Shown here: positions 20,601-44,600 of the stretch, piece by piece
How positions within the stretch are numbered: the first letter of the stretch is position 1
Layout of the letters: every line of letters starts with the position of its first letter
Origin: Saccostrea cucullata
Taxonomy: Eukaryota
Length of the DNA stretch: 64,000 nucleotides
Reading direction: 5' to 3'
Assembly (NCBI RefSeq): GCF_032062105.1
Contig: NW_026930920.1
Span: 1 to 64,000, forward strand
Translations under genes and position numbers: made by a program
Notes under the pieces: generated by a model
Told to the model about the DNA's origin: nothing
Database searches by the model: none
Seen by the model: the letters and a program-made list of their open reading frames with translations, nothing else

Positions 20601-23600
20601 TATCTTCATTGAAATCTTGATATGCTTTTAATAACTTACAGTTAAACTTTTTTATCTTCAACACTAATATCTGAAATACATGTATATGTACCATGCATAA
20701 GTTGAAGTGATTTGGCAGTCCCAACTACTTTTTTTTTATCTCTTTATTTACATTGTTTTCTCAAATCGTTCAAATCTCAAAAGTTTAATCTTAGTCCCAT
20801 GGAGTTTGACATATCTAAGCTTGACTGTATTTGTGATTTTTCCTCCAATGTTATTAAAGACTTTTACAATGTAATGAAAGAATTCATATTTTTTGTTTTT
20901 ATATTTACAAGAAAGAAAAAAATGTTCATTTTACAAAGTGAAAGATTTTGAGGAATCAAAAGAAATTTGAAACTGTAGAAAAAAAATAATTATAATTTTT
21001 CGATTTATTATAGCGATTCAGACTCAGGTTCTGATGTTATTGCGGATGACAGTGATGTCAGTTTTTCTGATGACAACCCCAACTATATAAACTACCAGGT
21101 GAGTGTACTGACATGATAATTATAGACTCCCGTATCATAATCATTACACTGAAGCACAGTGGGTACAATGGAAGATTAACAATGTGTAAACATTTCCAAC
21201 TCTGCATGGTAGTAACCTTTAAGAATACCAGTCAGCAAATTACAGAATCTCCCTCTTTATTGAAATTGCTTCCACATAAAAGACAAAAGTTGAACACATT
21301 TAGAAATTAGGAACATGCAACCAGTGAATCTATTTTTATTCATATATTATTGCTCTCTTTTAAAGAAAATATTTAGCAATAATTATGTATAGGAAATTAA
21401 CAACTGCATCACAGATAAGTGACAATATGTACAATATGTCGGCCATTTTGGTTTGGTTTTCCTAGGACTCCAATGCTATGAACAGCATGATGGCAAGCAT
21501 TTACAGAAACATGTCAGCACCTAGCACGTCCACCATGCCTCCCTTATCTCTTGGTCCTGACCCCCTCGTCTTAGATCCTGGGTACAGGAGTCCACCCTCG
21601 GCTGGGGCGGATGCTTGTATCACTATAGACGATTCCTCAGAATCAGACAGAGAGGTGGCCTCCACCAGCCAGGGTCCTGGCACCCCCTTCTTTTTGGACC
21701 GAGTGGGAGACAAACCACAGTCAAAGAAGGACACTGACTTTACTGATCCCAGTGCCCAGGGTAAGGCACCTGATGTGTCTGTCTGTCAGTCACCTGCTCC
21801 CCTTGTAGAGGTACAACAGGGGGGTCAGAAGAGGGAGAGGTCTGAGAAGACAAGTAGTAAGACAGAAGTCAGCGCCAAGGGAAAAGAGACCGAGGATGTG
21901 AGCTCAGGGAGAAAAACTCCTAAAGCAAATGTAAGTGTCTAATGTGTGTTACCGTAAACCAACTTTTATTTACCGGGGGTAAAATAGTTCTACGTAAGCT
22001 AGTTATTTTTCAGGATCAAGCCTTCTTGGGTCTGTTGTTAATAGACAAAGATTTTAAGGACCGGTTTGCGGCCAGAAATATTCCATTATGACAAGGCTTT
22101 CGCTAACCTCGCAAAAATTTCTCACAGATGAATAAATGTTGGTTTACAGTATTTCTTTGCTATCTTAAATATAATGTGAAAATGAAGTAATTCAACATTT
22201 AACAAACAATAAATTAAGATTTTTCTGCATAACAGACTTCTTTTTTAATAAAAAAAAATCTCAGTAGTATTTTGATCAGAATAGTCCAGATAAGTTTCAA
22301 ACCATCCACAGTTTCAACAAAGTCTTTATGCAAGTGAATATTTGTTTTGTATTCAAGTATAAACTTTTTTTTATAGAAAATGAAGAAATCCAGTGCTGAG
22401 GGAGAAAGAAAGGAGAAAAAATCGAAGTCAGGTACTGTATTAATTTTACAGAAAAAGCCCTGACTCTTTTATTGTATATATTTTGTTGTACAAACAAGTC
22501 TGATTGTAATTTTAGGTGCAGAAGTGCAGACTTCCAGTGTGACCTTTGCTGACGTTGGTGGAAATGATTCTGTATTGATGGTAAGTTTGAAAACATTTTT
22601 GAAAAATATGAAGAAAATGAACAATGATGGTATCAATTCCATTGTTAACACTCTGGTATTATCTACATGTATATTAAATTGATACTTTTTTAAACAATTG
22701 TAGGACATCTGTAAGTTGCTGGTACACATGAGACACCCAGAGGTCTACCGAAAGCTAGGAATCATCCCACCCAGGGGAATTCTGCTGCATGGACCCCCAG
22801 GTTGTGGGAAAACATTGCTTGCTCATGCCATAGCGGGGGTATTGCTTGGGTTATAATCTGTTTTGAGATTGTGTTTACTTCATTTCCTATGTACATACAT
22901 GTACATGTATATATAAATGTACAATTTGTATTATGCCTTTATTTAGAACGTTTATCATCAGCAAAAAATAAATTCCTGAGAAAGATGACATTCAGTGTGT
23001 AAAATATATTTTTAATGTATTTGTCACTGCATCACACATTTTTCAGGAGCTGAGTTTGCCCTTTTTGAAGATAGCTGCCACAGAAATTGTATCTGGTGTG
23101 TCTGGGGAGTCTGAGGAGAAAGTCCGGGATTTATTTGACCAAGCTGTGGTAAGTTTATACAGAAACAGTAGCAAACATCTGGAATCTGGTCAATTAAGCG
23201 AATGGGGCATATCTGTATGATATTCGGGTAGTTTTTGGCTCACCTGTGTCACTTAGGTGACTCATTGCTATCAGTTTTCATCTGTCATCAATCGGGCATG
23301 TGTCCTGTGAAAACTTTTCACATTTTTAGCTCACCTGAGCCAAAGGCTCAAGTGAGCTTTTTCTGATCACATTTTGTCCGGCGTCCGTCTGTCCGTCTGT
23401 CTGTAAACTTTTCACATTTTCAACTTCTTCTCAAGAACCGCTGGGCCAATTTCAACCAAACTTGCCACAAAGCATCCTTGGGTGAAGGGGATTCAAGTTT
23501 GTTCAAATGAAGGGCCATGCCCTCATTCAAGGGGAGATAATTGGGAATTTGGTGGTATGTTTTAAAAGTCTTCTTCTCAAGAACCACTGTGCCAGGAAAG

Positions 23601-41600: not shown

Positions 41601-44600
41601 AGAAAATGTTGATAATTGTCAATTGTTGAGAAAATTCACCAAAAAAGATAAAAGCCTGTTCACCTCATTTCATGATACTAGTACTAATAAGTTTTGAGAA
41701 AATAGAAATGATTGCCTTTATAAAAAGCTTCATCCTATAAATTTTTATGTTTTCCAGGTGGCAGCACCTTGTGTTCTGTTTATTGACGAGATTGATGCCA
41801 TCACTCCGAAAAGAGAGACCGCGTCAAAAGACATGGAGAGACGAATTGTGGCCCAACTCCTCTCTTGTATGGATGGTGAGTATAACCCCAATACAAGACA
41901 ATGATAATGTTTAGTATATAGATCTTCCACTGATTTAGTTTCTAAGATGGTAAACATATTGATTTTAGATTTGAACAAGAAGGAGGATGCCCATGTGCTG
42001 GTGATTGGATCAACAAACCGCCCGGATTCCCTGGATCCAGCCCTGCGCAGAGCCGGACGGTTTGATAAAGAGATCTGCCTGGGAATTCCAGATGAAAAAG
42101 CCAGGGGAAGGTAATTTTTGACTTCATACATAAAGAATGATAGGGGATGATTAGAATTTGTTAAACTGTTATATTTTACTTGATAAAATGTCTTCTTTAT
42201 TATATAAAAGCTCCTGAAGTTAGTTACTATATATTGCAAGTGAGAAAGTATAAGTTAACTCTCAGAGTGATGGTTAAGTTGTATAGTTCTACCCAAAGGT
42301 CCTTTTGTTTGTAGAATCTTACAAGTACTGTGTCGTAATTTGACCTTGAGCCCAGATTTTAACCTTGAAAGTATTGCCAAGAATACCCCAGGTTATGTAG
42401 GAGCTGACCTCACTGCACTTACAAGGGAAGCTGCCATGTTAGCTGTTAATAGGTAAGTAAAAACTGATTTCTTTATCACCTAGCTTACACACTTTGAAAG
42501 AAACACATAATAGGGGGGATATTTGAAGTTTTGTCTTTAAGTTTCACTGAAATGATCTGCATAGGCATTTTGTAATTACATGTTCAAGTATTAAACTGTT
42601 TATGAAAATTCTTTTACCATCTTCTAGGCTGGTCGACACAATAATAAAGCATCACATGATTGCTCTTTGTGATTAAAATATAATGAAATAAAAACAGGGT
42701 CCTGTAATACTAGAATCTGAAATAAACACTGAAGATATAAACTAATAAACTTACATCTGTCTATACATGTATAATAAACACATTTGCAAATAAAATTATT
42801 GATAATATTTTTCAGAGTCTTTAAAAATCTGCAGCCCCATGCAAGCCATCTAAGACAGGCATATGACCAAGGACTCTCCTGTAGCTCTAGTACTGAGAGA
42901 GAGGTACCAGAAAACCAGAGGGGGAACACCAGTGAACCAGAAACCAGGTCTCCAGATCAACCAGAAATTTGTAAAGACACTGATAAGTCAGATTCCACAG
43001 AAACTAGTCACAAAGAAATGGTAGAGAAGAATAGAGATTTGTCTGTACCTGAAAAAGACAATAATAGTGATAGTGTTAAAGACAGTATAGAAATTGATGT
43101 GAATACCAAGGGACATAACTCAGGAAGTGTTGACAAGGGAGAGAACTCAATTGACTGTTCACAAATTCCCTCCACATCACAAACCACAGAAAATCAACAA
43201 ATAAACGTGCAGTCACACATAAACACCAGTCAGGAAGGAGAAGATCCGAAACTAGAATACTGTATGTATTGAAATCCTTTTAAGAGAAAAATCAAGTTGG
43301 ACAAACAAATTAAGTTACAATGAAGATGTGTCATTTATTTTTTCAGTGTTACATCTACTGAAGAACCAGCCTCCTCTGACAGGAGAACAGCTCCAGGGAA
43401 TGTCTATAACCATGCAGGACTTTGAGGTATTTAGGGGTGTTTTATCATAAGCTTACTGAATATAATTGTTTTTAACATTTTGATAAGAACAGACAATAGA
43501 CTGATTCCATGTGTTTATTTTAGGAGGCCATTAAACATGTCCAGCCATCTGCTAAAAGAGAGGGATTTGCTACAATTCCTGATGTAACCTGGGACGATAT
43601 TGGAGCTTTGAAAGAAGTTCGAGAAGATTTAGAACTGGCCATTCTTGTAAATAACTTTATATTCTCTTATAATTACTGTTTTTTCAAATGAATCTTGAAG
43701 CATGTCTGGTTTATCATTGGCTGTCTTCAGAAATTTATTGTGTTGTTCCATCTCGTAGATGGAAAAGCTTGTCTATGAGATTGATCCACTCAATATATTT
43801 TTGTAGCCGGTAACAAATCTGACCAGAGATTTTTTTTTTTGAGGATAATAGTGTGACATATGAACACAAGACGTGAGGATCAAATGTTTTTGACAAAAAT
43901 TAATTCTGTAAAGTGTCCAATCTTCTCAACCCTTGATTCCAAAGTCAAACAAAACTCTTCAAAATCTTATAATAAGAGTTTACAGACAAATTATCTTGAA
44001 ACATCTGCAAGGCACCCTAATTGTTTTACTTTCAATATTTTGTTCCTGTTTTATTACAATCATTTTCCCCTGTTAGTGAATCTCAATGCTATTATCTCTT
44101 GTAGCAAAGATAGAATCAAGCTGATTTCATTTCTTAAAAGGGCTGCTACTTTAATTTCAAAATCAAAATTAGTAAGGAAATCTGTTTCCATTAATTTATA
44201 ATTCCTAATAAATTTATCAATTGGCAATTTTCAGTCATATTGCCTAATAAAAAAATTCTCACATGTGGGACATGAAAATAAAGCAGTCAGTAGCTGTCAT
44301 GTTTATAGACCAATGAAAGCATGATGTTTCTATCTGATTGAAAATAAAATTATATTCGCACCAAGTTCAGTTGTTTATGGTGTATATACAATCCTAGTGT
44401 ATATCAATATATAGAGTGAACTGGTTGCTAATGCTAATTTGTATTACATGTACTGATATATTTCATTTGAAAGAATTTACTCCAATATTTATTTACCAGG
44501 CACCTGTTCGGTATGCTGACCAATTCAAAAGTCTGGGAATTAACCGAGCTCAGGGAATTTTACTGTCAGGACCCCCCGGCTGTGGCAAGACTATGTTGGC

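Follow-up and report, generated by a model that had tools for sequence, protein, structure and literature searches.

The window analysed here is a stretch of 64,000 nucleotides of the oyster Saccostrea cucullata (contig NW_026930920.1, positions 1 to 64,000 of the forward strand), in which one intron of the gene NVL, itself on the plus strand, holds four intact genes on the minus strand. In a wider explanation to which we give about an even chance, the four genes are functional and spliced, their products are small coiled-coil proteins that form antiparallel hairpins, and the mollusc family to which they belong, which has no name, is organised, like histone genes, in two branches. We hold it rather probable that in molluscs, and probably in other spiralians too, the SLBP/U7 histone pathway produces the mRNAs of a family of non-histone proteins: its tandem stem-loop genes would serve S phase or early cleavage, and its intron-bearing variants other cells. 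The NVL copies look like the spliced branch and are probably polyadenylated, with candidate poly(A)-signal hexamers 290-750 nt after their stop codons. If this holds, the rule that stem-loop ends are confined to histone mRNAs would have an exception among animals, and the exception would point to a factor that is made alongside histones and largely missed by poly(A) RNA sequencing.

Four nested genes within NVL

The host intron (23149..41757, plus strand, 18,609 bp, GT-AG) lies inside the D1 AAA domain, between NVL exons at 23048..23148 and 41758..41876, the second of which encodes Walker B. RNA contigs join these two exons directly, with loose ends at 41757. A preliminary description of this DNA had put the intron at about ten times the length of any other; it is ~13 times as long as the next longest mapped NVL intron (~1.4 kb), with the first NVL intron mapped only roughly. 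Re-reading of the window also bore out the four antisense copies of that description, each with coding exons of 100 and 299 nt that encode 132 amino acids without stops or frameshifts, and with GT-AG, phase-1 internal introns of 354, 195, 159 and 195 bp in copies 1 to 4. On the minus strand, coding exons 1 and 2 are at 25470..25569 and 24817..25115 (stop codon included) in copy 1 (product P0001, LOC134230570), 30427..30526 and 29933..30231 in copy 2 (P0002, LOC134230571), 36677..36776 and 36219..36517 in copy 3, and 40444..40543 and 39950..40248 in copy 4, where RNA coverage of exon 2 is sparse. A genome search found no other close copies in the S. cucullata assembly. The gene had been called unrecognised, which holds for domain databases and not for NCBI, where the products match predicted uncharacterized S. 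cucullata models (LOC134230570-573). Other oyster relatives in NCBI are also uncharacterized (LOC133183669/70, LOC128177223-225, LOC125650505-508, LOC105345240, LOC109620850 and LOC144620103), without name, domain or function, and no paper was found on the identifiers of six of the uncharacterized oyster genes.

A splice acceptor stands before every ATG (AG, AT, then ATG; in copy 4 it ends at 40546, leaving two untranslated bases), which implies a non-coding exon upstream of coding exon 1. A Logan contig (L172, run SRR4419963) from a Magallana-type copy joins such an upstream exon to exons 1 and 2, and the donor at 40889 in copy 4 is homologous to the donor used in that contig. The four copies thus have the attributes of nested protein-coding genes: they lie inside a host intron, are spliced and are under selection, the junction being seen in the Magallana-type contig and not in S. 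cucullata.

Each of copies 2-4 has a conserved upstream block on the minus strand, for which a regulatory function is inferred in copies 2 and 3. In copy 2 (30660..30862) the donor is at 30862, CCAAT boxes are at 30776, 30745 and 30707, and a TATA-like element is at 30664; the corresponding positions are 37116, 37029, 36998, 36961 and 36918 in copy 3 (36914..37116) and 40889, 40798, 40767, 40730 and 40686 in copy 4 (40682..40889). The three CCAAT boxes fall between donor and ATG, are spaced ~31 and ~37 nt apart and are followed ~43 nt further on by the TATA-like element. The donor, kept in copies 2-4, is lost in copy 1. Copies in other oysters have two to four CCAAT boxes in the corresponding stretch, the background rate being 0.74 per 700 nt. 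Cell-cycle promoters driven by NF-Y typically show spacing of this kind, and the upstream sequences suggest that such a promoter may drive the NVL copies.

Conservation, selection and gene conversion

The antisense cluster also occurs within NVL of S. echinata (three copies), Magallana angulata (three copies) and Ostrea edulis (at least two in the stretch examined). Both flanking NVL exons were located in S. echinata and Magallana angulata; in Ostrea the downstream exon was located within the stretch examined. In S. echinata, the copy closest to the upstream NVL exon (L006:12774-13377) has a premature stop in exon 2, which indicates copy turnover.

Purifying selection, proposed earlier from the sequence, is evident in ratios of non-synonymous to synonymous divergence (dN/dS) of 0.07-0.31 in comparisons with S. 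echinata and 0.17-0.25 in those with Magallana and Ostrea. Between species, synonymous divergence (dS) of exon 2 is 0.29-0.40, near the NVL value of 0.43, so selection acts on the protein and not on the nucleotides; nucleotide-level constraint on exon 2 is rejected on the same comparison. Alternative reading frames of exon 2 were also rejected, with no such signal in dN/dS except in the antiparallel frame. When the window copies are compared with Magallana, dS of the nested genes is ~0.6 against 1.8 for NVL, and GC content at third codon positions is 0.58-0.68 as compared with 0.46; both the low dS and the high GC content could come from GC-biased conversion or from selection on codons.

Exon 2 had been described as nearly invariant beside diverged introns, and the window copies differ by 2-3.7% in exon 2, 3-20% in exon 1 and 33-40% in the internal introns. 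Trees of the two parts of the gene conflict. In the tree of upstream DNA with exon 1, two of the S. echinata copies cluster with copy 1 and the third joins copies 2-4 (100/100), and monophyly of the window copies is rejected (approximately unbiased (AU) test, p 7e-30); exon 1 of copy 1 belongs to an older lineage common to the S. echinata copies beside the same NVL exon. Exon 2 groups the copies by species and rejects positional orthology (AU p 9e-91). From these opposed trees it follows that at least two lineages predate the species split and that exon 2 was homogenised. Exon 2 is homogenised by gene conversion and exon 1 with the upstream DNA keeps the older lineages: one segment is closer within species while its flanks retain orthology, as in concerted evolution. 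The tandem duplication and gene conversion put forward in the preliminary description are therefore both upheld, and the NVL cluster, common to three oyster genera, illustrates cleanly how gene conversion among nested genes can be confined to one exon.

A 25-nt minisatellite starts at the stop codon of each window copy and is unique to the NVL locus in the genome. On the minus strand it spans 24722..24823 in copy 1 (4.1 units), 29696..29935 in copy 2 (9.6 units), 35930..36221 in copy 3 (11.5 units) and 39782..39956 in copy 4 (7 units). The repeat is not present in the clusters of S. echinata, Magallana angulata and Ostrea edulis. It may aid conversion, although conversion also took place in S. 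echinata, where the repeat is missing. That the repeat acts as a structured RNA was rejected, with an unsupportive z of -0.89 and the repeat missing from the other three oysters.

A predicted helical hairpin

The protein is predicted to fold as a long helical hairpin without a known family, in agreement with the earlier view of a helical protein lacking a recognisable domain. The AlphaFold model (mean predicted local distance difference test score 83) has helices at residues 6-49, 53-96 and 117-131, with a linker of low confidence before the last of them; the linker is modelled as flexible and is rich in S, T and P, and the C-terminal helix is conserved. Pfam scans of the exons, of whole database proteins and of the alignments of both clades described below gave nothing above cut-off, and a PDB sequence search gave no match. 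Foldseek against PDB, viral and Atlas libraries, and VIA, returned generic hairpins only, at background level (ESCRT-III, Vipp1, ING and Rad50).

Three further identities were rejected. A resemblance to HR1 comes down to faint scores in 3 of 63 members, and the shared EGxxN-like motif, itself faint (E >= 0.02), falls mid-helix. An ING identity lacks a Pfam match and a PHD finger, with fold E-values of 0.39 and 1.2. A histone identity is contradicted by the two-helix hairpin models, which have no histone fold, and by the lack of a Pfam or PDB sequence match.

Two clades of one family

Exon 2 served as the first query for relatives, followed by a profile; searches from the window were made exon by exon, and database records were used where a whole protein was needed. 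The gene had been taken for a lineage-specific family, a view that the wider distribution overturns: beyond the three oyster genera with the NVL cluster, intron-bearing relatives occur in Pecten, Pinctada, Mytilus, the unionid Potamilus and other oysters, and there is a larger intron-less sister clade. The S. cucullata genome holds several single paralogs of the intron-bearing clade. All mapped intron-bearing members have a phase-1 intron at the same codon, and most end in the conserved C-terminal helix motif. Members of this clade nest antisense in TDRD12, in codanin-1 and in a Mytilus kinase gene, which we take to be STK40; two more are antisense to AtuA-like and RS-domain exons, and a Pinctada relative lies outside any host, head to head with LUC7. 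NVL appears to be one landing site among several, and the nesting there would be a matter of history and not a regulatory partnership.

A profile built from intron-bearing members alone finds intron-less open reading frames (ORFs) in the S. cucullata genome (best E 3.5e-10), where an extended search raised the number of intron-less loci to ~30. The same search yielded 80 intron-less loci in marine metagenomes, and database proteins of this kind are known from Mizuhopecten, Pinctada, Tegillarca, Dreissena and Mya; viral contigs yielded no relative of these intron-less proteins. In HHalign the two clades match at 95.6% along 82 ungapped columns. The nested-clade profile scores all 63 of 63 intron-less members above 15 bits, with reversed sequences at <=4.1 and unrelated coiled coils of the window at <=1.1. 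A second model, of an intron-less protein, gives the same hairpin with its turn at the aligned position, and on the unrooted tree intermediate positions are taken by the TDRD12-nested clade and by locus C8047. Judged by profiles and predicted structures, the NVL-type genes are homologous to this widespread, often tandem intron-less clade. One locus close to the intron-less clade (L171, G000:C18994:28047-28262 plus upstream sequence) has an apparent phase-2 intron at another position than the NVL-type intron, and its sequence suggests an independent gain.

Histone-type 3' end signals in the intron-less clade

A stem-loop with a downstream purine-rich element has been described for histone genes (PMC10730174). 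A histone-type hairpin, with a 6-bp stem, a 4-nt loop and an A-rich 5' flank, occurs in 56 of 80 distinct intron-less loci, where shuffled sequences give 1.35%, and in most cases lies 13-63 nt past the stop codon. Many exceed the cut-off of Rfam RF00032, in the S. cucullata genome, in Mizuhopecten and in metagenome contigs. Stem pairs 1, 3, 4 and 5 each occur as more than one Watson-Crick type, with pair 4 mismatched in about one third, and a purine-rich element lies 11-16 nt past the stem in 52 of the 56. Across the whole S. cucullata genome, RF00032 exceeds its cut-off at 65 sites or more, spread over ~60 contigs. A candidate U7 small nuclear RNA (L173, G000:C3212:2763-2815) has a U-rich 5' stretch, an Sm-like site and a hairpin, and scores 31.2 bits, below the Rfam cut-off of 34.

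An array on four contigs (G000:C8535:258900-270450, C17664, C21111 and C467; loci L045, L052 and L142-L159) has at least 18 copies and probably a larger number. Its tandem unit is 1.6 kb, and the units scanned each hold a 5S ribosomal RNA (rRNA) gene, an intron-less ORF of 116 amino acids and a stem-loop 32 nt after the stop codon. The array protein has a basic hairpin and an acidic tail. A second 5S-linked lineage (L117) exists, and one intron-less copy (L127) adjoins a histone H3 gene. Mussel histone clusters are linked to 5S rRNA, which the 5S linkage of these relatives recalls.

The upstream 350 nt of 60 intron-less loci (L061-L167) often have TATA at -60 to -90. In the same promoters GTGTCA/TGTCAC occurs in 27 of 60 against 5.5 expected, the loci being non-independent, together with AGGTGT-type words; we presume that these words resemble TALE-homeodomain and T-box sites.

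Passages of two papers call histone mRNAs the only non-polyadenylated mRNAs (10.1101/2025.02.15.638447; PMC12775136). The literature search found no paper on the protein family, on non-histone animal genes with a stem-loop end or on such oyster 5S spacers, many subscription papers lying outside its coverage.

A proposed histone-like organisation and its alternatives

In the explanation outlined at the start, the first branch would be intron-less, often multicopy and stem-loop-ended, serving bulk synthesis in S phase or in cleavage-stage embryos. The second would be intron-bearing and probably polyadenylated, would serve other cells and would include the NVL copies, driven in dividing or germ-line cells by the triple-CCAAT/TATA promoter and kept as nested copies for dosage. 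The protein would most likely dimerise and act in the nucleus as an adaptor or chaperone, required in amounts that follow DNA replication, a proposal prompted by the basic second helix, the acidic tail and the signals of co-regulation.

Several observations weigh against this explanation. The NVL copies have no stem-loop, with no Rfam match in the window and no hairpin pattern within 400 nt of their stops, so the histone link is made via relatives only. A pattern search of the 400 nt after NVL-type stops found the hairpin in no intron-bearing member. The NVL copies are also not intron-less, each having one coding intron and one 5' intron, and many intron-less members also have no stem-loop. 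Copy 1 retains just one of the three CCAAT boxes. The two clades are separated by a long branch (1.8 changes per site) at ~17% identity, the metagenome loci are related and come from unnamed taxa, and locus counts represent non-independent events. No match of sequence or structure in Pfam, PDB or the fold searches points to a function. The spliced transcripts to be expected from the preliminary description are represented by the junctions in the Magallana-type contig; four S. cucullata RNA runs gave low unstranded coverage of copy 4 exon 2, none of exon 1 and no junction. The same mapping showed NVL junctions, and the reads on copy 4 exon 2 came from both mate directions.

The main rival, unlikely in our judgement and still the one to be taken most seriously, is that the NVL copies encode structural coiled-coil proteins of sperm or testis, for example axonemal ones, regardless of their stem-loop relatives. 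Among Drosophila nested genes 43.9% peak in testis and 71% lie on the opposite strand (PMC3814207), one relative of the oyster genes nests in TDRD12, and the weak fold rows include doublet-microtubule proteins. Those rows are, however, non-significant generic hairpins, and the fly statistic is a prior and not data on these genes, whereas dividing cells are what the CCAAT array and the setting of the family suggest.

It is improbable that the copies regulate NVL or ribosome biogenesis through antisense transcription or NVL binding, a link raised in the preliminary description. The nesting is kept across three oyster genera and relatives occur in a 5S rDNA array, which would suit such a role, but a specific link with NVL is unlikely because relatives nest alike in unrelated hosts (TDRD12, codanin-1 and the kinase gene), with others antisense to AtuA-like and RS-domain exons and the Pinctada gene unhosted. 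Selection on amino acids, with exon 2 dS of the same order as that of NVL, likewise speaks against it.

About as improbable is a minimal membrane-shaping hairpin of the ESCRT-III/PspA/Vipp1 type. The top VIA rows are Asgard ESCRT-IIIB, Vipp1 and Snf7 (Z 11.0-11.7, root-mean-square deviation 2.1-3.0 for most), and the basic hairpin and acidic tail of the array protein would fit. These Z values nevertheless fall short of the ~13 that unrelated helical bundles would be expected to reach, and many other rows equal them; identity is <=13%, and with the intron-less model Rad50 and LSD1 coils rank just as high. When this reading was put to the test there was no Snf7 or PspA profile match and just the hairpin aligned, at background Z; the protein is too short for helices 3-4.

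There is little likelihood that the similarity between NVL-type genes and the stem-loop clade is coiled-coil convergence, which would leave the NVL genes an orphan nested cluster. Identity is low and the reverse search reaches just 11-38 bits, but reversed, heptad-shuffled (1/315 above 15 bits) and unrelated coiled-coil controls fail, while the intermediates (the TDRD12 clade and C8047) and the ungapped 82-column match with the same turn argue for descent. That the copies are assembly artefacts or transposon fragments has a negligible chance, the orthologous clusters having refuted it. Fragmentation of the assembly and its duplicated contigs elsewhere (C8 and C14651) would favour this reading, but the introns differ by 33-40%, three further species have the cluster, the genome contains just four close copies and the minisatellite is unique to the locus. 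A transposable element was rejected on the small number of close copies, the mostly single-copy distant paralogs and the lack of element domains, so that neither the dispersed-transposon nor the haplotype concern of the preliminary description materialised.

A conserved stem-loop family with compensatory changes and a fitting downstream element makes the histone-only rule testable in oyster or mussel embryos. The family names a candidate protein co-produced with histones, with the NVL cluster as its spliced branch; taken apart from that family, the cluster would hold moderate interest only.

Other features of the window

Within the host intron, a MITE-like (miniature inverted-repeat transposable element) insertion of ~1 kb with 97-bp terminal inverted repeats (98% inverted match) lies upstream of copy 2 (30940..31971, no strand assigned). 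An ORF of 128 amino acids at 26159-26545 on the plus strand has no Pfam match and resembles the C-terminal end of a non-LTR retrotransposon protein. A repeat element with 166-bp internal units occurs at 23323-24039 and, in opposite orientation and at 85% identity, at 9344-10070. Tandem genes on the minus strand at 49296-63546 have an N-terminal CARD followed by a long coiled-coil exon, the CARD being above the Pfam cut-off at 56237-56554 and 63208-63546. An exon at 782-1135 on the minus strand has no Pfam match; we take it to be part of a prolyl oligopeptidase-family peptidase gene.

Comparison with known systems

The family can be compared with three kinds of known system. The predicted antiparallel two-helix hairpin has a similar length to the ESCRT-III/PspA/Vipp1 core, the ING N-terminal dimerisation domain and the HR1 repeat; unlike ESCRT-III and ING proteins, it attains no significant score and has neither the further ESCRT-III helices nor the ING PHD finger. 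The nested copies resemble Drosophila opposite-strand nested duplicates (PMC3814207, PMC5174743) in being short duplicated genes in a long intron of a conserved gene. They differ in that the oyster cluster is old, is conserved across Ostreidae and has undergone exon-restricted conversion, and in that one mollusc family has entered at least four unrelated hosts with its intron kept. Nested duplicates and gene conversion are known kinds of phenomenon; the protein family is without a name. The closest parallel to its organisation would be with histone genes: like replication-dependent histone genes, the relatives are intron-less and often tandem, with a stem-loop and purine element (PMC10730174), and like the polyadenylated histone variant genes, the second branch has introns and no stem-loop. 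The family departs from histone genes in its protein, a predicted helical hairpin with no histone fold or sequence match, and in the NVL copies, which do not have the element.

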